Shown here piece by piece: positions 10,158 through 64,000 of a stretch of DNA of 64,000 nt (position 1 is its first letter; every line of letters begins with the position of its first letter). The DNA lies in NCBI GenBank assembly GCA_965235115.1, contig OZ249446.1, positions 8,804,001 through 8,868,000 on the forward strand, written 5' to 3'. Made by a program: the position numbers and the translations under genes. This DNA comes from Laetmonice hystrix (taxonomy: Eukaryota). The notes under the pieces are model-generated. The model was not told the DNA's origin. It worked only from the letters and a program-made list of their open reading frames with translations, and did not search any database.

Positions 10158-12079
10158 CTGCTCTAACAGATAGCAGATTCCCCAAACCACACACATCGCG
10201 AGATGGCGCCACAGGGCGACCAGACAGGCTGGATCCCAACCGTAGAGACCACACACGAAGATCTGTTATAATCATTGACTATAATATATAACATTTACTG
10301 GTCTGGGCACCGCACCAGTCATGTGACTAGGGCAGCGAGCCTAGCACTGCGCAGGACCCGCTGCGCGGCATAGATAACCCATTCCTGGGTGATTAATGTA
10401 AAACCTAAACATTCGGGCAAGACTCCAGTTCTACGATCTCGTGTTCAGGAGTGATCGAGTCCGGCATGTACCGGGGCAACGCGTCCCTGGGTTATCAATA
10501 TCACAAATGAATGGAAACATTTTCGGGATTCCCAGAGTTATGAGCGGGGAGGGGGTGTGGTTCGATTACTGGCCATAAACCGTCGGACGGGCCAGCAGAT
10601 CAGGCTTACTACTGCGGATTATCTCGCTATTCTTCCCATACTGGAGGCAGGGTTGATCTGGTTCAGTTTACAACGTCTACCTCGGGTGGAGAGGGGGAGG
10701 GAGACATGTAGAGAACGAGAGAGAGAGAGGTAGGGAGACAAAGAGGATGAGGAGTGGGGAGAGAGGGGGGACAGGGGGGGGGGCAGAGGGGTTTGGTCAA
10801 AAATGCTCTACTCCCAGAATGAAATATGTTGCCCCACTGTTAATCTTATAGTGATTTGGTACTGGCATATGACCGAGAATGTACAGGCAGGCTCCACAAC
10901 CGTGAACGTAAAACTCAATCCGTAAGGCATGTATACTTCTATTGATATAATCCATAACGTTGGTACTCCATAAAACATGAAAATCCGTAACATTTTCTTA
11001 AAGTACAGGGCCGTGCTCTGCGTAAAATTGTTGGGTGGTCAGACCTAGAGTTCTGAAGGGCATCACAAAGATGAATTCATACCCTTAAAAAGGGCATCTG
11101 CTCGTAAAAAGGGCACTTTTTCACCATAATTTGACTCTACTAGAAGGGAGCAGCTGCCCCCTGCCCCCTGCTGTATCGAAGAGATATGTATATCCAATTA
11201 AAAAACTAATGTTTATCAAAATAATGTTTTATTAGTTAATCATAGGCATATGCACGTTGTAAAGCATACAGGCTGTACAGTTTGTGTATATAATATGTAT
11301 ACAAGTTGTAGTTATTCTTCTCACAACGTCTGGTACGGACATATTCCAGTGTCAGAACTTTTCACATTATAAGTATATTTTGTTGTTCAGTATTAAAGCA
11401 GCTTGAATTCTCTTCACGGAGGCGTCACGTAGGAGGCATAATTATATACACTGGGGGTTACAAACGATGTCCTGTTTTTTTTGGTGGCAGGAAAGGTCAT
11501 GTAAATATCCTCCCTTATCGAGAAATCCCTAGCAAAGGCGCGCTGCGGCTGGCTCCCGTCTTCCAAGGTATCAATGACATTTGTGAGCCTATTACCCGAG
11601 TTCCCCTCTTGATTGCCCTCTGCCCAGATTTAGAAGCCGGCACAAACACTGGTTGGGCCTGGCGCCACAAACAGATGACGACATTCAATATGACGGGACC
11701 GTCAGATAGGCACTGGCGTCAACGCCATTACAGCAGCTATATATAATAACGTCCATTCACGACCGTCTCTGCCATCAGTGGGCGGTGGTCCTTTCATGTA
11801 AGACCGATGGTTGGGGAGGGACCCCAAAGCCACCACAAAACTCGCACAGATTTGCTTCACCTTGCCGTTTGTAAATGGATTCAATATAACGGCCACGTCG
11901 GTAACATGGTCACTGTACATCCTGCCGGCCTCTTTACGTGTAAAGGTCGAATACCATGGCGACATGTCTGCATTTATTCCCGGGTAATCGGCCGGAGGTC
12001 TGCACCACAAAAGCACATGTATTATATTCGCTCATTCCCCGTACACGGTTCCACTCCTGGTGTATTCGTACTGATCCAT

Positions 12080-12578
12080 CTAATGAGCACCAACGGGCAC
12101 CTCGATGTCAACTTCTCCACGCGAGCACCAAGTAATATCCCTATCACCAGTATTAGCTAGAGATCTATTTCTTCCCAGCGTAGACTGCTGTTGGTTGATC
12201 ACGGCATCCGGGTCTAATTCAAAGTACTGCGCATGCGGTATCTCGCCACTTCCGCTTGCACCTGTCATGTCTCGCCGGTCGAATTTCGGACTCTCGTACA
12301 CGTGTTCAACGTAGCGAGAATCTCGGCCGTCGCTTGACGTGGACACTGGGTGGTACGGAGGCGGGGGTAACTCCGAGCCTTGGATACTGTTTGGTTTCCC
12401 GGATCTTTGTTGTAGCTGCCACGTACGGTAATAGTTATTTTCGCCTGGATTATACAGGTCGAGGTTAGCGCGATCTTTCTCCGGGTCTGTCTGAGCGTAT
12501 GGTCTGGGATCCTCTCCATTGTAACACGACACATGGGAGAAACTATCCATTCCAGCTGGACGCTTTTCTCGACGCTGC
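12080..12578 (-). CDS. Gene A: last exon, cytoplasmic tail with NYYRTW, PPPPY, YVEHVYESP and QYFELDP motifs
   Basis: Acceptor taactgacag|, phase 2, frame continuous with the 156-aa ORF to the stop at 12080. All eight exons total 1578 nt (525 aa). Motifs are shared with gene B. Confidence 0.92.
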
Positions 12579-12834
12579 CTGTCAGTTACATAGCAAGCAT
12601 AGGGAGAGAATCAAAAGGGGGAACTTTTAATACAATTACGGAATTCTTCAAGATGACTCAAGAAAGTGATATAATTAATGTTCGTTCCACTTTTTGCCAA
12701 CTTGAAGTTGCAAATAAACGAAATAATCAATGAAAGCAATTTGCTTTTGATGAACGTCCTTAATGATATTGAAGTATTATATGCCTAATCTAGATTGTGA
12801 TCATGCTAACATTTTGATATACAGATTTACTTAC

Positions 12835-12916
12835 CATTTGAGACAAAGAAGACCACCGACAAGTATGAGGATTCCAACCAAGATGGCCACGCCAATAATT
12901 ATGGCTATCGATATTC
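12835..12916 (-). CDS. Gene A: transmembrane exon (GISIAIIIGVAILVGILILVGGLLCLKW)
   Basis: Acceptor gttgcag| and donor ATG|gtaagt. 82 nt, phase 1 to 2, about 24 hydrophobic residues followed by basic residues. Confidence 0.92.
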
Positions 12917-13268
12917 CTGCAACGTGCATCATTCAAGTTGCTTATAACCACATAAAATGCCTGAATATATGACCATCTTTCACGATCCAATTTTTATGTT
13001 TTCTGCCCAGTTTATAATACATTTAATAATGAGAACATTTTGTACACTGTTGTTTCGACGCTGCAAATACATGTATAAAGCCAATCAGGACGAGATGAAG
13101 ACGAAGATGAAATGCAGATGAAACACTCCCAAAGTCAACCGACTCGATTTCTATATCCTGTTGATAACAAACTTGTAATGCACACCTTCACAGTTCTATT
13201 TGATGATTCGGATGCCGGAAAAACCGACATGAATGGAATAATTGTTGACAGGCGCGTGACTGGCTTAC

Positions 13269-13325
13269 CTTGTGAGGATGAAACGGCATTCCATATTCTA
13301 CCGGAAGCACCAGCGGACGCGGGAA
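13269..13325 (-). CDS. Gene A: 57-nt juxtamembrane stalk exon (VPASAGASGRIWNAVSSSQ)
   Basis: Acceptor ctcttttatccag| and donor AAG|gtaagc. Phase 1-1, open. Same length as the gene B exon. Confidence 0.85.
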
Positions 13326-13628
13326 CTGGATAAAAGAGAAACTAGGGCTGTAAGGAAGGTTTACATGGCGTTCTTATACCGAGATGGTCTTGAATTCAGC
13401 CCGAATATTTCAACATTCAGTTCAATACATATGACAAAAATAACAGGAGTAAAAGTTTGGTCATATTCAAGACGGGGGAAATTATCCCTGAAATCCAATA
13501 AAATGATTGCCCCGGAAAGGATCTATACGTCAGGCACTGTTTGGCTGAAAATGTTTAATGTATTAGTACAAACGATATTGTAAACTGAGGTTCCGACATA
13601 AAAGAGTAAAAACTGAGCTGACACGGAC

Positions 13629-13781
13629 CTCTTGAACAGTTGGCGTACGAGCCAATCCAACTGTTACGGTGACACCTGAGGCGCCATGTCTCGTCTGTCG
13701 CCTCACATCCAACCAAAACGCTGTCTCCTGCACGTTTCACCCACCCGCCGATAGGTGGCGTCAGGTCAGGGCATCCGATGG
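13629..13781 (-). CDS. Gene A: CCP/sushi-like domain exon (IGCPDLTPPIGGWVKRAGDSVLVGCEATDETWRLRCHRNSWIGSYANCSR)
   Basis: Acceptor ttctttgtccttgcag| and donor GAG|gtccgt. 153 nt, phase 1-1. Four Cys with W between C3 and C4. A homologous exon is present in gene B. Confidence 0.88.
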
Positions 13782-13970
13782 CTGCAAGGACAAAGAAGGT
13801 GATGTGTTTCCGATCAAGTATTTAATAAGTATTTCCATTTAGGGTACAAAAGATAATACTCGTTTTATGACGAATAATTGACAGACAGCCCGCATTGGGG
13901 ATAATATAGAATGGACGCCCTTATAGACGTGCAATTTTCCAGCAAACCGCCTCCTAGCGGGAAGCCTCAC

Positions 13971-14378
13971 CTTCAAACTGGAGCATGAAATATCCATGAT
14001 CATCATTTTCCTGCCTCTTCGTGACGATACGTATCTCAACGGTGTTCTCTTGAGACGTGAAGACGTGACTCGTTCTCGAACTGTCTGGGCACACCGTCTT
14101 TGATGACGTCACGCGCCTCTCTTTGATAATTGCGTACACGTGACATGGCGGAGGTAGACCCCGGTGGTCGGCGTCCGTGCGACCTGGCTTCCGGTTAACG
14201 CTATCAAAGTCCCACAGCGTGAGGTTGAGGCGCTGGCCCGGCCTGGCGCGCACTAACCATGGCGTATCAATACTTCCACATCCGGTGTTCTCAGTTATCA
14301 TGCTGGAAATGTATCCCTCCGCCGCCGTAACCTCCACAAAGCTGGCCGACCGGCACTCATCCGGTTTGACTGTCATCA
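13971..14378 (-). CDS. Gene A: CUB-like domain exon
   Basis: Acceptor attgttacag| and donor AAG|gtgagg. 408 nt, phase 1-1. GYISS..GCG...PWLVRARPGQRLNLTLWDF...FTSQENTVEIRI...FMLQFE fits the CUB pattern. Confidence 0.9.
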
Positions 14379-15663
14379 CTGTAACAATAGCGAACACAAT
14401 AAGGAACGAACAGTTGGCCACAGCCATTGAAGTCGGCTATTTGGGAGACGTTTCAGGTATGCGCGTACGTCCTCAGTTGGTCTGTACGGCAGTGGACCAA
14501 CAGGTAACAGACCTGTGTCTCCTGTTAGCACTGCTGTATAGCTTTAATATAATAGTCCTATATATAATAGTTCTTTGTTTGTAGGGCCATTGTTCCCCGG
14601 GTACCCGGGATAATATTCTAACAATATTCTAAAGATGCGGGCAATGCGTAAAACCACCATCCTTTACTTATACGGCCATTGTATGCATATTGAGAGGTAA
14701 TATTTAGCAGAAAGCAGAGACAGAAAGTGAATTTGCTAGGGCTGGCTAAATATAAACGGAAGTCGGTTATGAGGCCCTAACTTGCCGGGGGGGGGGGCAG
14801 AGAGTGGAGAAGAATCTGTTTCCCCCATTGTTTCCGGATATTTCGTATGTTTCGGCCAAAAAGGCCGAAACTGTAAAAGCCCAAAGCAAGAAAGAAATGA
14901 AATGGTCATTTTCAGGGGAGGTAAGCTAGGTGGGCTCCGCGCTGAATCTGCGCCAGACATTTTACCAACTCAGCTGGCGATGGACTAGATATTCATGGAC
15001 CTGTCGAGCACCGTGAAAGTCGCCAGAGGATTTAGAGAGAACCGCCCTTTCTCGGATAGATCCTCAGGGTTGTCAACCCTGACCAAGTCGACGCAAAGAC
15101 CGACTCCGGGCGAGATACCATCATCACCTTGTCTGTAATTATATTGGACTGGCAATAGACAGCGCTGACGTGACGCCATTTGGCGTTGAGAGGGGGCTGA
15201 GATTGAACAGCAGTGAATGGCCAGCGGTGGGCACGGTGTAAGATGTCAGACGTGACAGTGACGGCCACTGCTGATCCCCCTGACTCCGGCGGCAGTTGGT
15301 CGTGTCAAGAGCCGTCAGCAGGGATCGATGGGCGCCCCCTACTGGACTCCCTGGAGACCGAGCCTGACTGACCCTGAAGTGAAGCCAGCCAGACCCGACA
15401 GTCTCGCCCAAACGTAGTACAGCGCTTATGCAGGACAGATAACTAGGAGTTGCGTGATCTGTGAACCCATCGCCTGCATGTAAAAATATTCAACGCCAAG
15501 TTAGGCCTAGGGCCTACAGGGAAACAAACTCATACCCAGTCGCACCGAAATAACCGGTAGACATTCGTGTCGGAAGCTGTTAGATGTTAGAAGGGGTTAG
15601 GACACCTGTCTTTATCAGCATTGGCTCTTTCCGGTGTAATCCGACCAAGGTGGGGGGACTGAC

Positions 15664-15782
15664 CTTTGACACAGGAGTAGGAAGCTTCTAGGAAACTTCT
15701 GAAGTCCTTGGGGCAGGGTTTGCTGGCCCCTGTCAGAAGAGTAGTGACCGGGATCTCACACGACGGCCGGCCCGAACACCAC
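15664..15782 (-). CDS. Gene A: SUEL lectin domain, second half (WCSGRPSCEIPV...PCPKDFRSFLEASYSCVK)
   Basis: Acceptor cgctacag| and donor AAG|gtcagt. 119 nt, phase 2 to 1. Contains the CSG+.SC...PCP....+L..SY.C signature. Confidence 0.92.
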
Positions 15783-16261
15783 CTGTAGCGACACAGACCT
15801 TTTGTAACACAACATTTGGCATATGAGAACACCTAGAGGTACACTGCTAGAACAGCTCTGTTGTAACGTTAGTGGTTCCCTTTGTCTATTATTATGCTCA
15901 CCTGTCGATGGAACATATTTACTGTGTTTTAGTCCATTGTTTGAAATCTTTGTATGAACGTAAGTTGAAAAAGGTCATTCTATTAATTTCTTTCTTGAAG
16001 CATACTATTGACGTTTTTTTATTGGAATGCAAACTAATGTTCTTTTTTTCAACAAGACCAGAATTTGCATGCAATTGCAGTACTGCTGGTTGTGTTGAAT
16101 GAAGGTTCAACATCTTATTCTTGGATCATTATATCCTTTCAATTCTTTGTTGTTCTTTTGTTTTAATTATTGACAATTCTCGGCTTATTTAATCTAGGTA
16201 TATGGTATATTGTCTACTAAAACCTGTACAAAAACGGCTAAACCCATCAACTTCTTCCTAC

Positions 16262-16427
16262 CTGTCGAGGTGTGCCCTGACGTCAATAGCACATCCAATA
16301 TGGCCGTAGTTCCTTGAGACGCAGCGGCCTTCACGCATGCGTCCGTATAGCGCGTGTTGTATGATGATAGCTTCCCCTTCCGGACATGTGGCAGTGAACG
16401 TTTCGTCCTCACAATACTCCGTATTGT
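16262..16427 (-). CDS. Gene A: SUEL/rhamnose-binding (Gal_Lectin) domain, first half (NTEYCEDETFTATCPEGEAIIIQHALYGRMREGRCVSRNYGHIGCAIDVRAHLDR)
   Basis: Acceptor tttcctttattcag| and donor CAG|gtagga. 166 nt, phase 1 to 2. Contains the C.....I.I..A.YGR....C signature of SUEL lectins. Not in the ORF track in this frame. Confidence 0.92.
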
Positions 16428-19400
16428 CTGAATAAAGGAAAACAATACATGTTCACGTATATTGTTACTATACAAGGGGCCAAGTTACTGATATGACAAC
16501 AATACAAGAGGCTCATCACTGACATATTTAAAATCAATACCCTGTCATAATACAGAATATACACACACTTTATCCACAGGTATCTACCGATTGCTTACTC
16601 TGAGCCTGCTCAGATCCCTGTGCAGCTCTAAAGCTCATACGGTAGGGTTGTCAGTAATGCGAGCCTAAAGTCGGTGCACTCGTCCAGCTTACACTAATGT
16701 AACATCTAAGGGGTTGGTGAGGCGGTGGATGAATGCTGCTGCCTCCGGCAGAGCCTATTCCCACTCCGCTTACATCTGTTTCTGCTGCTAGTTGGCACTG
16801 TAAAGGTGACATTCTATCTGCTTGTCATTGGGTCTGCCATCGGCCTCAAAGATCCATTTCCAGCATTAGACTCGTCCATTGGTAACAGGACCAGGGATAG
16901 AGGGCCTTTGTCCGACATAATCGCATAATGGCACTGCACCATGGTCAAGTCAATATGGTGATACCTTAATCGGTAGATGGTTGGACCCTGGTCTGTGATA
17001 TGCAAGTCTATGGAACTGACTTGTAATAGGTGGTCAGAGATGAAAAAAGTATCATACACCTAGTCAATACACCACCTGCATCTCCGAGACACAGTTAATA
17101 AGTAGTGACAGACTTTAGTATTTATGACCCGAGAGCCTCAGTGGGTCGAGTCCCATGGATGGCTGCGATGTCCACTTGAAGTGACCGCGTGCATATCAGA
17201 GACGACCTTTCTTGGGGATACTCGAGTCTGAAGCCATCCCAGGGGGCAGAAGGAGGGAAGGTCCCAGCGGCCACCTCCCGGAATACTCGCATTAAAGGAC
17301 AATAAAGAGATTCAAGGTCAGCACACCGGGCGATTGAGGCTCTCAATTGGGCTCTCAATTGTGGGGCACAATGACTGACTGCTGCAGGCCCGAGGGTCGG
17401 GGGCAGACACCCGGTTCTCATAACCCTGGCGGCGATAGGCAGAATTATGGTCCAGTACTAGCCCCCGAACGTGTCTCCGCATAGACAACGGACAATGGCA
17501 GCCAACTGTTGGCGTAGAAGTTTAAAGGATCAGCTCTTATTGCAGGAAGTTCACCATGAAAGGGACGATGGTGATTTCGAAAGTTTTTAATGGCTTTCAG
17601 TGCGTTTCAGTTTAATTACCAAAATATGGTAGAAATGACATTATAATAAGGAATAAGAAACTGCACGGCATGTATGATATGGGCGTATAGGAGAGCATTC
17701 CTCCTGACCATGCAGTCGGGAGGGCGACCATTCCCACAGACATGGTAGTAATCTGTGTGCTAGCCAATCGTGTAACAAATATCACAGGATCCGGATGAGA
17801 AACCATTGAGATGACCTATGACCTCTCGCGAGTACGTACTCATGAGTTCCGTCGATGCCAATTGTGGCCTTCATAAAACACAGGAAAAAATCGTGATGTC
17901 GAAGGCGGGTCCAGTCAATATTAATGGTTCAACCGTTATCATTTCACACGTGCATTCCTCACGTGCACCACGTGAAGACTGTCGATAGTGACCGATACCG
18001 TGCACACGGGCATGCCCACTGTGGCGTACAACGTGGCCAGCAGAGCATGAGCTTTTATTTTCATTCATTATTTCATTTCATATCCTGTCCCACCGCATTG
18101 CTTAGTTGGCCACGAGTGACTAGACGGTATGATATCGAGGTACCTTTAGCCTCTCCCCCTAACCCCCCGGGACCGTACCCCCCGGCTCAGGGCACCAGTA
18201 TCCGGCCACCAGAGATCAAAAGGACACAAGATGAATATTCCCGGCAAAATTAGAGGTCAGAGGGATCGATTTAATAAGCGGACCTGTAAGCAGCGGGGCG
18301 ATGAACGTGTGACAGGTCCAGTTGATTCATGGCGGCAGGGGAGGGCAAGGAAACGCCGCATGCTAATGACCCCAGCATAATGGCCGTCACCGGCAGATAG
18401 AGGCCATGTCGCCCAAAGACGTAAACCAAGGCCAAGCCTTATTTCAGAGTAATCATTGATTTATGAAAGCTGTCCTTCAGTTATATATGCATTATGACGA
18501 CGGCTCAGACTCTATGACATGTGAAACTGTTGGGGAGCTACCTTCTTTTATGGTCAGAATGAGGGCCCCTGTGTTAAGTTGCAATGGGGATCTTTCCATT
18601 AAAACCACGTAATACTACATCATCGCAGTGGGTAGGACTTCAGGAACAACATGGTCTTTCTGCCATACATCCGGCCTGGTGTGGTACACTATTTGTACGT
18701 TTTTCTGACGTTATTATGACCTTTTTCTGATGTTATTATGAGAATTGAGCCCATGTTGGTCGTCTTTACTCTCAGGTTTGCCTCAGATATGGTGGCATGA
18801 GTGGGTACAGTCCTTGCCGCTTCCCTGCCCTCAACCCCCCTGTCTGCCTGCTTGCCTGCTCGCTTGGTGTCTGAATGATGCTCCGATTGCGTGATCCCAT
18901 TTGGAAGTACAATTATTTCACTCCTGAAGTCCGGTGCTACACAGGGTCATCATCTCCCTGGACGCCATGCCGGTACATACGTCGGTGAATAATTCACGTA
19001 ATATTGATATATTCACTATCCCACACTGGCAATCAATGGTCATAGTTAAAGTCCATGAGTTTATCGGCCTGCCAGTCTGCCAGACCATTTACAGCTGACC
19101 ATAGGTGGCGCTGTGCACGCCTTCCAGTTATCAATTGAAACATAAAAAGACGTATACGTATATGATTTCTACTTTGAATGACATGTCCTTGTGTTGTATC
19201 ATAAAGCCGTGGAACCTGACAAGGAGGCGACGGTGCACGTATGCAATATTGAATAGATGTCAAATCGGGAGTTTATATCCCTTGATCAGATTTCTTTATG
19301 AAACGTGCAATATCCAAGACCAGCGGCTCAGAGATGGAAAATGTATAATCGTAAAGAGAACTGTATAGGTTTCATTTGCCAGCCATGCACGGTATTATGC

Positions 19401-51407: not shown

Positions 51408-52203
51408 TACGACCGATCTATTTTAAATCGAGATATACGATCAAATCGCTTGTTTATCATGTGACTTTATCCCCCCCCCAATCGCGTGATTAAATAGTTT
51501 TATATAAAGTTTGATTTCTTAAATGATTACACACAAAATAATGATTTCTTGTAATCGAGGAACCTTGTTTGAGGTGTTGCGGGGTGTTCCTCAGCTTGAG
51601 GGATTGCTTGTTGAGGTCCTTGAGTTCTATCGACCAGTCCCGTTCAACATTGCCCGTAACCTGAGGGTCAATACCCCGGGGCCTGGGTCCGAGCCTACCC
51701 TGGATCAGGACATGGTCATGTCGGTCAATAATGTCGCCTGCTGTCGTGACCGGTGGCCATCTAACGACGGTCGTTGGTGGGCGCCATTCGTTACGACTGA
51801 CTACCGTCCTTCCGCAACCTCCCTGCGCGCATGCGTCGTGACCGATCAGTCGCTAGGGCTGACAGGATCCGCGTGGGGTCGCTGCTGTCGTCCGCGGATC
51901 ATTTCTACATACCGCGAGTAGTAATCAACTTGTTTCCTTAATTATCTATACCACAACAATTACATCAGGGGTATTAAAACATACGAGCATGTTGCCGTTT
52001 AGAGAATTACATGTATTACATCACCCACCGTGCTGTAATACGATAGATGGCCATGACTTTCCGCTGTTTTAATGATGTTTTAGCAGTGCCTATACAATTC
52101 CTAATAATGTATTTTCTGTATTAAAGGATAAAATCACTACCGTCATGCCGGCAGGCCATCATGGCATGGTAATATGTTCCATCCTGTTCGTGCATCGATT
52201 TAT

Positions 52204-52774
52204 TTCCTATGCCAATCTACCTTGAGTACTGTTTTGTATACCATCGTTTCCTATGCCAATCTACCTGGAGTACTGTTTTGTATACCATCGATTCCTATGC
52301 CAATCTACCTGGAGTACTGTTTTGTATACCATCGGTTCCAATGCCAATCTACCTGGAGTACTGTTTTGTATACCATCGATTCCTATGCCAATCTACCTGG
52401 AGTACTGTTTTGTATACCATTGATTCCTATGCCAATCTACCTGGAGTACTGTTTTGTATACCATCGATTCCTATGCCAATCTACCTGGAGTACTGTTTTG
52501 TATACCATCGATTCCTATGCCAATCTACCTGGAGTACTGTTTTGTATACCATCGATTCCTATGCCAATCTACCTGGAGTACTGTTTTGTATACCATCGAT
52601 TCCTATGCCAATCTACCTGGAGTACTGTTTTGTATACCATCGATTCCTATGCCAATCTACCTGGAGTACTGTTTTGTATACCATCGATTCCTATGCCAAT
52701 CTACCTGGAGTACTGTTTTGTAAACCATCGGTTCCTATGCCAATCTACCTGGAGTACTGTTTTGTATACCATCG
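52204..52774. repeat. Minisatellite, 44-bp unit, about 13 copies
   Basis: Unit tcctatgccaatctacctggagtactgttttgtataccatcgat. It gives 44-aa periodic ORFs in all three + frames. Confidence 0.97.
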
Positions 52775-53713
52775 TATACTGAAGTGGAGGGAAGGACGGG
52801 AAGAGCTATATTGACTACGTATTGGTCATATAAACACAGATATCCTATCCTGATTCTCTCTGACCAGAAATTGTAGTGACCCCCCGCCTCCCCCCCAGTC
52901 ACACCGTCAGTACCAGAACTAGCCAATGTAGAACTTCACCACCAGTAGGCTCCGTGACATATTTAGTACGTTTTTCCTCCACCAGGTAGCGTTCTTTCAC
53001 CACCCAAGCAGAATTGATATTATATGGCGTGACTTGTTTATAAACTATTGCCTACCATATATAGAATCGTCTATTATGGAAACGTATGTATATATGATAT
53101 CAGTTTATAGCGTGTCATTGTGAATGGAAATATGTTGTATTCCGTCCTATTAGCAATATGAATTCCTAATGGTTGCTATGCGACCGGAATGTCAAGGGGC
53201 ATATCAGTAACGATGTCCCCGGGTCGATTCAGATCGTCCCGCCAATATCAAACCGCAAAAGTCCTTCCACTCATGACCCTGTCACCACCGGGGCAGACTA
53301 TTTTTGATTGTCCGTGCCGCGGGAGATTTCACGCAGTAGTGAAAACCGTTTCAGCCGTCACAGATGACATGTCTCTTTAGAAGTTCGGTTTAATTTCCGA
53401 CAGCAAACTCGTCAGACAGTGGTGTGTCAGCGGGGGCCAGGAATCGATACACAGGTCTGTCAAACACACACGAGCTCTCCGATTGCTGGTGTAGAAAACA
53501 AACCAGGCAGGGAGGTCAAACCTTCATTGACTTTACTAATAAGAAAAGCATCGCATTCATCAGATCAAAATTCCTAAATAAAACGCCGTTCTTCCTATCC
53601 TGTGGGAGTGTACATCGAACAATGGAGGTTTTCAGTGACGTTTGGGTATAGTATGCGCCTGACACCGCCGCCACTTTCCATAGACTACTCGGGCACAAGG
53701 GGGACCCGACTGG

Positions 53714-53945
53714 CTGGCCGCCGAGACACCACGGGCCGCCGACACCACGGGCCGCCGAGACACCTCCGGCCGTCGACACACCACCGGCCGCCGACACCAC
53801 CGGCTGCCGAGACCCGTGTCGTCGTTAGACGGACGCCAGCCGCCGACACACCACCGGCCGCCGACACCACCGGCCGCCGTCACACCACCGGCCGCCGACA
53901 CACCACCGGCCGCCGACACCACCGGCCGCCGACACCACTGACCGC
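53714..53945. repeat. Degenerate GC-rich tandem repeat, 16-18-bp unit (ccgccgacac[ac]caccgg)
   Basis: Direct reading. Confidence 0.9.
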
Positions 53946-54014
53946 CGTGGGTGGAGGTCTCACGGTACTATACAGGCGGTATATGACCAGAGTAATGTAT
54001 GATGTAAGCCCTCT

Positions 54015-55795
54015 TGATACCGACCGTATCTGGTGATGTTTAGTATGGGAGATGAGACGACCTCGTGATGATACCGACCGTATCTGGTGATGTTTAGTAT
54101 GGGAGATGAGACGACCTCGTGATGATACCGACCGTATCTGGTGATGTTTAGTATGGGAGATGAGACGACCTCATGATGATACCGACCGTATCTGGTGATG
54201 TTTAGTATGGGAGATGGGGCGACCTCATGATGATACCGACCGTATCTGGTGATGTTTAGTATGGGAGATGAGACGACCTCGTGATGATACCGACCGTATC
54301 TGGTGATGTTTAGTATGGGAGATGGGACGACCTCATGATGATACCGACCGTATCTGGTGATGTTTAGTATGGGAGATGGGACGACCTCATGATGATACCG
54401 ACCGTATCTGGTGATGTTTAGTATGGGAGATGAGACGACCTCATGATGATACCGACCGTATCTGGTGATGTTTAGTATGGGAGATGGGACGACCTCATGA
54501 TGATACCGACCGTATCTGGTGATGTTTAGTATGGGAGATGAGACGACCTCATGATGATGCCGACCGTATCTGGTGATGTTTAGTATGGGAGATGGGGCGA
54601 CCTCATGATGATACCGACCGTATCTGGTGATGTTTAGTATGGGAGATGGGACGACCTCATGTTGATACCGACCGTATCTGGTGATGTTTAGTATGGGAGA
54701 TGAGACGACCTCATGTTGATACCGACCGTATCTGGTGATGTTTAGTATGGGAGATGAGACGACCTCGTGATGATACCGACCGTATCTGGTGATGTTTAGT
54801 ATGGGAGATGAGACGACCTCATGATGATGCCGACCGACTGGTGATGTTTAGTATGGGAGATGAGACGACCTCCTGATGATACCGACCGTATCTGGTGATG
54901 TTTAATATGGGAGATGAGACGACCTCATGATGATGCCGACCGACTGGTGATGTTTAGTATGGGAGATGAGACGACCTCATGATGATGCCGACCGTATCTG
55001 GTGATGTTTAGTATGGGAGATGGGACGACCTCATGATGATACCGACCGTATCTGGTGATGTTTAGTATGGGAGATGGGACGACCTCATGTTGATACCGAC
55101 CGTATCTGGTGATGTTTAGTATGGGAGATGGGACGACCTCATGATGATACCGACCGTATCTGGTGATGTTTAGTATGGGAGATGAGACGACCTCATGATG
55201 ATACCGACCGTATCTGGTGATGTTTAGTATGGGAGATGGGACGACCTCATGATGATACCGACCGTATCTGGTGATGTTTAGTATGGGAGATGGGACGACC
55301 TCATGTTGATACCGACCGTATCTGGTGATGTTTAGTATGGGAGATGAGACGACCTCATGTTGATACCGACCGTATCTGGTGATGTTTAGTATGGGAGATG
55401 AGACGACCTCATGATGATACCGACCGTATCTGGTGATGTTTAGTATGGGAGATGAGACGACCTCATGATGATACCGATCGTATCTGGTGATGTTTAGTAT
55501 GGGAGATGAGACGACCTCATGATGATACCGACCGTATCTGGTGATGTTTAGTATGGGAGATGGGACGACCTCATGATGATACCGACCGTATCTGGTGATG
55601 TTTAGTATGGGAGATGGGACGACCTCATGTTGATACCGACCGTATCTGGTGATGTTTAGTATGGGAGATGAGACGACCTCATGTTGATACCGACCGTATC
55701 TGGTGATGTTTAGTATGGGAGATGGGACGACCTCATGTTGATACCGACCGTATCTGGTGATGTTTAGTATGGGGGATGAGACGACCTCGTGATGA
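54015..55795. repeat. Minisatellite, 54-bp unit, about 33 copies
   Basis: Unit gataccgaccgtatctggtgatgtttagtatgggagatgagacgacctcatgat. Confidence 0.98.
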
Positions 55796-59131: not shown

Positions 59132-59639
59132 CTATGACGTATATGATCCCGCTGAATTATTTTTGGTATCATGAACATTCATGCCTGGAAATGAGCATCT
59201 TTGACTCGGCATGGCCGAATTTGTCTGGCTGGAACTACTTTCTCCATTGGTGGTATTTTTCCTTGGGGTGAAAACCTCTGCTTCTGGGTCCAACTCGTAA
59301 TACTGGGCGGGATCCTCAAACTCGGACACATCTCGTCTGTGAAATGTGGGACTTTCATAGACATGTTCCACGTAGCGCACGCCGTATTCGCCACCGTCGG
59401 GTTGAGTCAAGGAACCCAGCTGGGATTCTGCCGCCATTGTACCGACTTCCGGTACGGGTATCGCCGGCGGACGTCCCTGCCCGTGACGATGTAGTTCCCA
59501 GGTCCTGAAGTAGTTGTGTCCGCCATTGTTGGCTGGGTTCAGTAATGTGTTGTTCTTGTTGACATCTCCAGCCTCCATTACATTGGTACATGGAGACCCA
59601 CGCTGACTCGGGGTACGCCGAGTGGTCCGAGTCCATTTT
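59132..59639 (-). CDS. Gene B: last exon, cytoplasmic tail with NYFRTW, YVEHVYESP and QYYELDP motifs
   Basis: Acceptor ttttgcttctcctcag|, phase 2, continuous with the 173-aa ORF to the stop at 59132. Confidence 0.92.
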
Positions 59640-59898: not shown

Positions 59899-59980
59899 TT
59901 TCTCAGGCAAACTACTCCTACGACGAGGATGACGAGCGCGATTGCCATGGCTACCAACGCAATAACCACAATGGATAGAT
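59899..59980 (-). CDS. Gene B: transmembrane exon (DLSIVVIALVAMAIALVILVVGVVCLRK)
   Basis: Acceptor ttgtccttccag| and donor GAAA|gtaagc. 82 nt, phase 1 to 2 as in gene A. Confidence 0.92.
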
Positions 59981-62290: not shown

Positions 62291-62444
62291 NNNNNNNNNN
62301 NNNNNNNNNNNNNNNNNNNNNNNNNNNNNNNNNNNNNNNNNNNNNNNNNNNNNNNNNNNNNNNNNNNNNNNNNNNNNNNNNNNNNNNNNNNNNNNNNNNN
62401 NNNNNNNNNNNNNNNNNNNNNNNNNNNNNNNNNNNNNNNNNNNN
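62291..62444. other. Assembly gap (N run) inside a gene B intron
   Basis: 154 N bases. Confidence 1.
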
Positions 62445-63703
62445 TTCTCCCCTAATTGTCGATAAGTCTCATACATTTCGCAAAGCGGGTCAAATGACAA
62501 GGTGAATCAGGTGTCCAAATGAAGTGGGCCTAATTGAACCTATTAAATGAATTCGATTATTCTAATCTTTACAAAAATTAGAATGACCGGAAAATGCATA
62601 ACTTTATCATCATAATGGTAAAGACAAAGGCGTAGCTTTCATTATATACGGACATAATACGTACTTTTCCTCTCAGGTAGCATAGGCCGTAAGCTATTTT
62701 GTCCCTTGTATTTGCATTAAAGCTACCCATGAAAACCAAGACTGTAACATCTCATCACAGACACACCATGTACCAGAGTGAATTTGTACCTTCTCTCAAA
62801 AAATGACGACGTGCCTTCAGTCATTAGTAAAGCTGTTAAGTTCAAAGTCGTACCGTTTGTTTGATCTTATACATACGAGCGCGAAAGGTACAGTACCAAC
62901 CAACAGTAATATTATCGTAACACGTAGAAAAGAGCAGAAAAAGACAGGGAGCACGGAGCACAAGGGTCGACCCGTGCTGGCCTCTTTATCACAGACCTTC
63001 TCTTTATGTATACCCCGTCAATAACTAACAAAGACAAAATATTGTATTATGACCTAGCAGTCCGTCAACGAGGCTTACCCAAGGAGTTCTCTCCCTCGTA
63101 CACACACAAACACACAAATTAGATTAAGATTTAATAAAGTAAATAAATAAAAATGAAATAAATATGAAATATCTGCCTGGTATTACCAAGCTTTAATATG
63201 TTTCTGCTGTGGAGCGTAAATGGCATACCTGGTCGCAGGAAATTGTTCATTTAAAACAGCTTCTGAATCTTTCTTTGATCTGTTCATTTAAAACAACTGC
63301 TGAATAGTTCTTTGATTGGAAGTGCCAGACACAATCGTAATATGTCACACCTATTGACATCCGCCATATTTGTTATCGTTTTGAAGATTCCATATGTCGC
63401 ATAAAAGAATATGAGAGAGTCGACCATGATCTATAAATTATACCCATCACTGACTGAAGAACAGGCAGGGAGTATCAATTTTTAGCCGTGTCAATTTTTA
63501 GTCCAGCAAATTGCATTATGCCAAACTCAAGGTTACGTGCAGTATATAATTCATAACGCGACACCTAAATATGGCTTCCTGTCCTTTTCGTATGTCACCG
63601 ACTTCCTAACATAATTATTCTCGCCATTGTGATGAAAATCTGCGGGTTTCCTCACCGCCACGGCTCCTTATAAGGTAAGTGATTGCAAGCAGTGAAAACC
63701 TAC

Positions 63704-63859
63704 CTCCAGTACAATTGCCTGACTCTCCGAGCCAACGGTTGCCGTGACAAACCAGCTTCCAGACTTTCTCAGGCCGTCCGCAGCCTATTTCCGCCTTCTT
63801 GTCACCGTGCATCTTCACCCAGCCGTGGGCAGGCTTCTCAGGACGTGCGCAGCCGATGG
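63704..63859 (-). CDS. Gene B (paralog of A, 5' exons beyond the window): CCP/sushi-like exon (IGCARPEKPAHGWVKMHGDKKAEIGCGRPEKVWKLVCHGNRWLGESGNCTG)
   Basis: Acceptor tttgccgttacag| and donor GAG|gtaggt. 156 nt, phase 1-1. Aligns with the gene A exon (IGC, GWVK, GC, W.L.CH.N.W.G, NC). Confidence 0.9.
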
Positions 63860-64000
63860 CTGTAACGGCAAAGGTCAAACAAGTGGCATGAGACGGCATC
63901 AAACCTTCCACACTCCAACTCGATCTTAGGGTATGTTCCGTATCACTTATACATGAAGAGGAACGGACAAAATTAATATAACAATCTACGTAATGGAAAC

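Follow-up and report, generated by a model that had tools for sequence, protein, structure and literature searches.

Genes A and B, located on a 64,000-nucleotide stretch of the genome of Laetmonice hystrix (positions 8,804,001 to 8,868,000 of contig OZ249446.1, assembly GCA_965235115.1; the entire stretch that was analysed is called the window), are members of a multigene family of type I single-pass membrane receptors. On present evidence, this family is annelid-wide. The cytoplasmic tail carries three short linear motifs, each of which is centred on one invariant tyrosine. Their order is fixed, and the spacers between them vary in length. These motif islands are under very strong purifying selection.

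Gene structure and domain architecture

Genes A and B are tandem paralogues which are both encoded on the minus strand, ca. 47 kb apart. In this order, members of the family consist of a signal peptide, a SUEL (galactose/rhamnose) lectin, a CUB and a CCP/sushi domain, a single transmembrane helix, and ca. 160 residues of cytoplasmic tail. The exons of gene A were defined by tblastn, both between paralogues and starting from relatives in the databases. The CUB and lectin exons of gene B fall past the end of the window. Positions are those of the window:

16261-16452, minus strand: gene A, first exon of the SUEL lectin (approximate bounds; tblastn with family members)
15650-15832, minus strand: gene A, second exon of the SUEL lectin (approximate bounds; tblastn)
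13957-14400, minus strand: gene A, CUB exon (approximate bounds; tblastn, weak match to Pfam DUF7805, CUB fold of the homologous region)
13597-13821, minus strand: gene A, CCP/sushi exon, a four-cysteine module (approximate bounds; tblastn, alignment, and fold of the homologous region)
12835-12916, minus strand: gene A, transmembrane exon (reads ISIAIIIGVAILVGILILVGGLLCLK followed by a split W codon; phase-2 GT donor)
12080-12578, minus strand: gene A, terminal exon for the cytoplasmic tail (165 codons, followed by the stop codon at 12080-12082; translation)
63672-63860, minus strand: gene B, CCP/sushi exon (tblastn and alignment)
59899-59980, minus strand: gene B, transmembrane exon (phase-2 GT donor)
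59132-59639, minus strand: gene B, terminal exon for the cytoplasmic tail, stop codon included (translation; AG acceptor)

The tail exons of both genes have a canonical AG acceptor and an in-frame junction with the upstream transmembrane exon, the predicted splice junctions reading LCLKW-QRREKR (A) and VCLRK-KWTRTT (B). In both genes, the stop codon follows shortly downstream of the third motif island. Three sets of DNA contigs from the source sample cover the introns and contain no joints.

Each of the 11 family queries aligns with its lectin domain to the lectin exons of gene A. Of seven full-length homologues, six have a PF02140 (SUEL_Lectin) match that passes the Pfam gathering cut-off, and the match of the gene A lectin exon by itself is weak (E = 0.026). 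The CUB and CCP exons of gene A and the CCP exon of gene B align to the family by tblastn and in the alignment. For the CUB and CCP region of the Arenicola marina homologue UCK81578.1, an AF2 model was obtained with a pLDDT of 87 and a pTM of 0.80; its best matches in PDB are the CUB2-CCP1 segments of MAP-1 and C1s, followed by many single CUB domains. Intron-free Logan contigs of ca. 2 kb, which encode full-length relatives, suggest that the family is transcribed in other species.

Positions 62291-62444, within the gene B intron between the CCP and transmembrane exons, consist of 154 N (gap or masked). Three tandem-repeat arrays are located between genes A and B: 52204-52774 (44-bp unit, 13 copies, 97% match), 53716-53947 (GC-rich, with a unit of 16-52 bp), and 54015-54500 (54-bp unit, 9 copies, 97% match). 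Long ORFs at 52174-52814 were rejected as genes, being translations of the 44-bp array.

Motif islands in the cytoplasmic tails of A and B

According to the initial annotation, the two tails share NY[YF]RTW[QE]L, RYVEHVYESPxFxRRD, and AQY[FY]ELDP[DE]A in the same order, and strings, order, and coordinates proved exact on the translation. The positions of the motifs are:

12404-12442, minus strand: A, motif 1, ENNYYRTWQLQQR, including NNYYRTWQLQ (invariant Y and W; family consensus ENDYYRTWQLQR)
12353-12370, minus strand: A, LPPPPY (PPxY; present in part of the family only)
12269-12316, minus strand: A, motif 2, RYVEHVYESPKFDRRD (family consensus [ED]-H-[IV]-Y-E-S-P-[KT]-F-x-R-[RK]-[DE])
12203-12232, minus strand: A, motif 3, AQYFELDPDA (family consensus Q-Y-[YF]-E-L-D-P)
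59483-59518, minus strand: B, motif 1, HNYFRTWELHRH, including HNYFRTWELH (translation)
59330-59377, minus strand: B, motif 2, RYVEHVYESPTFHRRD (translation)
59279-59308, minus strand: B, motif 3, AQYYELDPEA (translation)

The PPPPY that had additionally been described for A is indeed found in its translation, as part of LPPPPY, and no PPxY occurs in the translated tail of B. Where PPxY is present in the family, it sits between motifs 1 and 2. The BLASTP alignment of tails A and B (E = 2e-15) spans 108 columns, of which 40% are identical and 19% are gaps; the identities are almost all within the islands.

The view that this is a receptor without a catalytic domain holds: the tail ends in a stop codon, no Pfam match was found in the tails, and the tail is predicted to be disordered (AF2 model from a 79-sequence alignment; pTM 0.23, mean pLDDT 60). 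Peaks of local AF2 confidence coincide with the three islands. Short helices are predicted for motif 1 (pLDDT of ca. 75 in A) and directly after motif 3.

Retention of the motifs within the genome and in other species

The whole 627-Mb genome was searched for paralogues, both with single sequences and with a profile. At least 13 tail exons carry the cassette, five of them clear and eight divergent. Four of the clear copies (A, B, C, and D) form a tandem row on the contig of the window, with a spacing of ca. 47-66 kb, and the fifth is found on contig C2 at 51.5 Mb. The divergent copies, which read GYTHVWELR, EHIYESPKFERR, and PFYHELDP, are located on C2 (6.1-6.9 Mb), C30, and C12 (16.1 Mb). For six of these, the upstream DNA was analysed: the same lectin-CUB-CCP ectodomain is encoded in four, one has only a CCP exon within 10 kb, and the sixth, which is without motif 3, has none of the ectodomain exons.

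The tail exon at C2:6617115-6617165 carries a motif-1 variant (NYGAMW), PPSY, and VHVYESPKFIRRD. It is devoid of motif 3, and the 10 kb upstream contain no exon for a lectin, CUB, or CCP domain. This copy may be a family member whose ectodomain is a different one or whose intron is longer, or it may be decaying.

From five tail cores, a profile was built and compared to 1.84 billion representative proteins. It retrieved 139 matches with E ≤ 1e-3, including 50 with E ≤ 1e-10, and the resemblance between A and B is thus not due to chance. Of these, 137 belong to the family and retain motifs of the cassette. Those that are named are all from annelids and represent at least six named species, among them Arenicola marina, Capitella teleta (several matches), Paralvinella palmiformis, Ridgeia piscesae, and Helobdella robusta. 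Together with the paralogues, these matches settle that the motifs are retained beyond A and B. A word-indexed protein search returned three matches for the tail region of UCK81578.1 and four for the full-length profile, probably because low-complexity words swamp the index. In the ESM Atlas, UCK81578.1 is in an annelid cluster with 106 members, and the next nearest cluster is from rotifers, whose ectodomain may be similar.

The two remaining matches, a repeat protein from Ixodes scapularis (KAM7308792.1) and RON2 from Plasmodium, are off-family and were set aside. KAM7308792.1 (897 aa) consists of nine near-identical repeats and matches the tail profile with E = 1.8e-14. Each repeat holds ATWIYDSPRFIKENP, a look-alike of the central annelid motif (I-Y-[DE]-S-P-[KR]-F), which could reflect convergence or an assembly artefact.

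Among the 137 family matches, the central motif is present in 136, motif 3 in at least 108, and motif 1 in at least 97; all three occur in order in at least 76. The latter three counts are lower bounds, as many matches are truncated ORF fragments. PPxY is found in 41 of the 137. Spacer lengths range from 25 to 95 and from 8 to 67 residues. Motif 2 is constrained over thirteen consecutive positions. Its tyrosine and S at +2 are found in all 136 matches, H at -2 in 135, and E at +1 in 134; further downstream, R at +7 (121) and F at +5 (113) are also strongly retained. In motif 3, L is at position +3 in 92 of 108.

In an alignment of 79 tails, the commonest residue has a mean frequency of 0.70 within the islands vs. 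0.17 elsewhere. The invariant residues are Y49, W53, Y94, S96, P97, and Y118, so that just three tyrosines are invariant. None of these is replaced by F in any of the 79 tails, even though Y and F are freely interchanged at the residue adjoining the motif-3 tyrosine, which suggests that the hydroxyl group is needed.

Purifying selection on the islands

Tail exon A was compared to an orthologous tail exon from another species, found on a Logan contig. Over 45 island codons (including LPPPPY), there are 24 synonymous differences and a single non-synonymous one. This corresponds to a dN of 0.009, which compares to 0.45 for the remaining 116 codons, a ca. 50-fold contrast. Amino acid identity is 98% in the islands vs. 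48% elsewhere. Because synonymous sites are saturated, no dN/dS ratio is given. Selection had originally been proposed from the island-like conservation, and these values bear this out.

One would have to consider that neighbouring paralogues, tandemly arranged on the same strand ca. 47 kb apart, share islands simply as a leftover of recent duplication or gene conversion, without any selection. We regard this as exceedingly improbable. The island DNA of A and B is only 70% identical, 18 of the 27 island codons which specify the same amino acid differ synonymously, and synonymous sites are saturated here, too. The islands are also kept in distant annelids, and the saturation of synonymous sites in the comparison with the orthologue excludes gene conversion. 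The initial annotation had named recent gene conversion as the explanation which would undermine selection, and it can now be dismissed.

For tail exon A, the DNA contigs from the source sample reveal five SNPs. All affect a third codon position and four are synonymous; the single replacement is outside the islands.

The three contig sets from the source sample differ at many sites over 12000-16600, and these are considered to represent haplotypes. Among the SNPs checked in the tail, CUB, and CCP exons of gene A, 11 of 11 are at third codon positions. A 3-bp indel at 13799 falls inside the CCP exon as approximately delimited, and indels near 13827 and at 13913-13917 fall into the intron that separates CCP from CUB.

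Resemblance of the motifs to known binding sites

The YESP core of motif 2 equals the consensus Vav SH2 site found at ZAP-70 Y315 and Syk Y348 (PMC2196311), and SLP-76 has two YESP sites to which Vav and Nck bind (PMC2525600). In ZAP-70, Syk, and SLP-76 (Y112, Y128), this core is also in a disordered segment. However, these sites belong to cytoplasmic kinases or adaptors of vertebrate immune cells, while the annelid motif is part of a receptor tail. The flanks differ, and the annelid extension K-F-x-R-[RK] has no counterpart there. This is a likeness of motifs and not homology.

The resemblance of EHVY to the Nck-binding sites of EPEC Tir and vaccinia A36, pointed out in the initial annotation, is accurate. 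The ligands of the Nck SH2 domain are EEHI-pY-DEVAADP in Tir and TEHI-pY-DSVAGSY in A36 (PMC9333988). Tir Y474 and A36 Y112 have the E-H-I-Y-[DE] context in common with motif 2, through position +1. At +3, they have V, whereas the annelid motif, a putative ligand, has P. Tir and A36 are pathogen proteins which mimic host sites.

The SH2 domain of Crk prefers YxxP, and Abl prefers substrates with the context [ILV]-Y-x-x-P-F. The EHVY context of paxillin Y118 is similar to that of motif 2. An Abl orthologue is encoded in the genome (E = 3e-50), and there are at least 32 matches to SH2 exons. When short SH2 exons that are candidates for Nck or Crk were compared to the sequences from PDB, they matched SH2 domains generally, with SHP-2 as the best match. 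Two adjacent SH2 exons, ca. 600 bp apart, are found at C1:49029435-49030260. By eye, both resemble the SH2 domain of Csk, which suggests either two SH2 domains in tandem or an exon that has been duplicated locally.

Motif 3 is of the YxxL type and fits SH2 ligands and the YxxΦ sorting signal alike. We know of no known motif, phosphotyrosine motifs included, that matches motif 1. An assignment as ITAM was rejected: only motif 3 is YxxL, motif 2 being YxxP, and A and B have no second YxxL/I at ITAM spacing. The ITIM pattern [SIVL]xYxx[ILV] was likewise rejected for A and B, as motif 3 has A at -2. The statement that the motifs are not canonical ITAM or ITIM is thus correct for A and B, yet an ITIM-like [SIVL]xYxx[ILV] is present at the third island in 41 of 108 family members.

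Comparison with known receptors

The closest relatives are proteins from other annelids: UCK81578.1 from Arenicola marina, which is annotated as "Gal-binding and CUB domains containing receptor 15", as well as unnamed proteins from Capitella, Paralvinella, Ridgeia, and Helobdella that are described as "SUEL-type lectin domain-containing". These belong to the same family, with the same domain order and the same three tail motifs. A and B are other paralogues, being ca. 30-45% identical.

The vertebrate proteins DCBLD1/2 and CDCP1 are likewise single-pass and non-catalytic, with a CUB ectodomain and a tyrosine tail that is rich in YxxP. Clusters with these proteins are among the nearer ones in an ESM Atlas feature search (scores of 0.81, which we take as a lead only). 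The YxxP sites of DCBLD1/2 and CDCP1 recruit Crk-family adaptors. However, these proteins lack SUEL lectin and CCP domains, their tails are not matched by the tail profile, and they constitute a separate family.

EVA-1/EVA1C also is a single-pass protein with a SUEL lectin ectodomain, but the structural match is weak (TM of ca. 0.3), and EVA1C has neither CUB nor CCP. Its clusters contain the Pfam domain FAM176 (PF14851), which was found neither in the tails (maximum E-value 1) nor in seven full-length homologues (maximum E-value 0.01). For the membrane-proximal ectodomain, the best structural match is the CUB2-CCP1 segment of C1r/C1s/MASP/MAP-1 (Foldseek E = 3e-6 to 2e-4, probability 1.0). 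These are secreted proteases or non-catalytic splice forms, and with 12-14% sequence identity, the likeness is at the level of the fold only.

Proposed function of the tail

We infer from the sequence that the tail of this non-catalytic receptor becomes tyrosine-phosphorylated, that SH2 adaptors bind at motif 2 and an SH2 protein or AP-2 at motif 3, and that PPxY serves in turnover, and we favour this reading with moderate confidence. Clustering of the ectodomain by a ligand would lead to phosphorylation of the tail by cytoplasmic Src- or Abl-type tyrosine kinases. The phosphorylated [ED]-H-[IV]-Y-E-S-P-K-F-x-R-[RK] would then dock an SH2 adaptor such as those of the Nck, Vav, or Crk classes, with actin and Rho-GTPases as the putative downstream output. 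The C-terminal Q-Y-[YF]-E-L-D-P would dock a second SH2 protein or the endocytic adaptor AP-2. In some members, PPxY would recruit a WW ligase of the NEDD4 type, resulting in down-regulation. Motif 1 (ENDYYRTWQLQR) is predicted to be helical.

The same motifs might chiefly direct trafficking and turnover in a lectin receptor that functions in endocytosis, with YxxΦ being recognized by AP-2, PPxY by NEDD4, and the tyrosines remaining unphosphorylated. An ectodomain with lectin and CUB domains is compatible with cargo uptake, motif 3 fits YxxΦ (with its L at +3 in 92 of 108), and 41 of 137 members have PPxY. We nevertheless consider this unlikely, as motif 2, which is the most conserved island, has P at +3 and hence is not a YxxΦ signal; recognition by AP-2 does not account for the invariant residues of this island (H at -2, E at +1, S at +2), and PPxY is missing from B and from most members of the family. 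Slightly less probable still, in our judgement, is that the islands are segments which fold upon binding to a scaffold or cytoskeletal protein, with the tyrosines acting as aromatic contacts and phosphorylation playing no role. The helices predicted at motif 1 and after motif 3, with their locally raised pLDDT, would agree with such a role, as would the W of motif 1 and the F at +5 of motif 2, which are conserved like the tyrosines, and the constraint on 13 residues in motif 2. What speaks against it is that the core is the exact SH2 consensus YESP in the EHIY context of Nck ligands, and that not one of 79 tails has F at any of the three tyrosines, in contrast to the free exchange beside motif 3. 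Against the reading as phosphotyrosine motifs, we note that the constraint on motif 2 extends beyond a typical SH2 footprint, and K-F-x-R-[RK] could be the site of a phosphorylation-independent partner. The predicted helix and lack of any known phosphotyrosine motif at motif 1, and the fit of motif 3 to YxxΦ, also count against it.

More tentatively, the cassette (ENDYYRTW, EHIYESPKFxRR, QYYELDP) may be an annelid-specific signalling module, analogous to ITAM or hemITAM, which would couple the recognition of glycans or of self/non-self to actin remodelling via Nck/Vav. Phagocytosis by coelomocytes would be an example of its use. The family comprises at least 13 genes in this genome, and at least 15 are named in Arenicola.

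Significance for annelid receptors

The receptor family is already represented in the databases, with one descriptive name in GenBank, and the individual motif types are known. A literature search by family name, architecture, and motif strings retrieved no paper on these receptors or their tail motifs, and the ordered cassette of three tyrosines with its 13-residue centre appears to be undescribed. As the tail motifs are described neither in Pfam nor in the literature searched, the set of motifs is useful as a sequence signature for annotation of the family.

Receptor-proximal signalling is, to our knowledge, very poorly characterized in annelids and other spiralians. Tails in expanded families of lectin-type receptors from spiralians usually are without recognizable features. 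Here, the tail of a whole receptor family can be read as a set of precisely conserved motifs, three or four in number. One of them has the exact sequence of a vertebrate Vav/Nck SH2 site. If the tails indeed function in phosphotyrosine signalling, this would represent an independent invention of an immunoreceptor-style tail outside the vertebrates.
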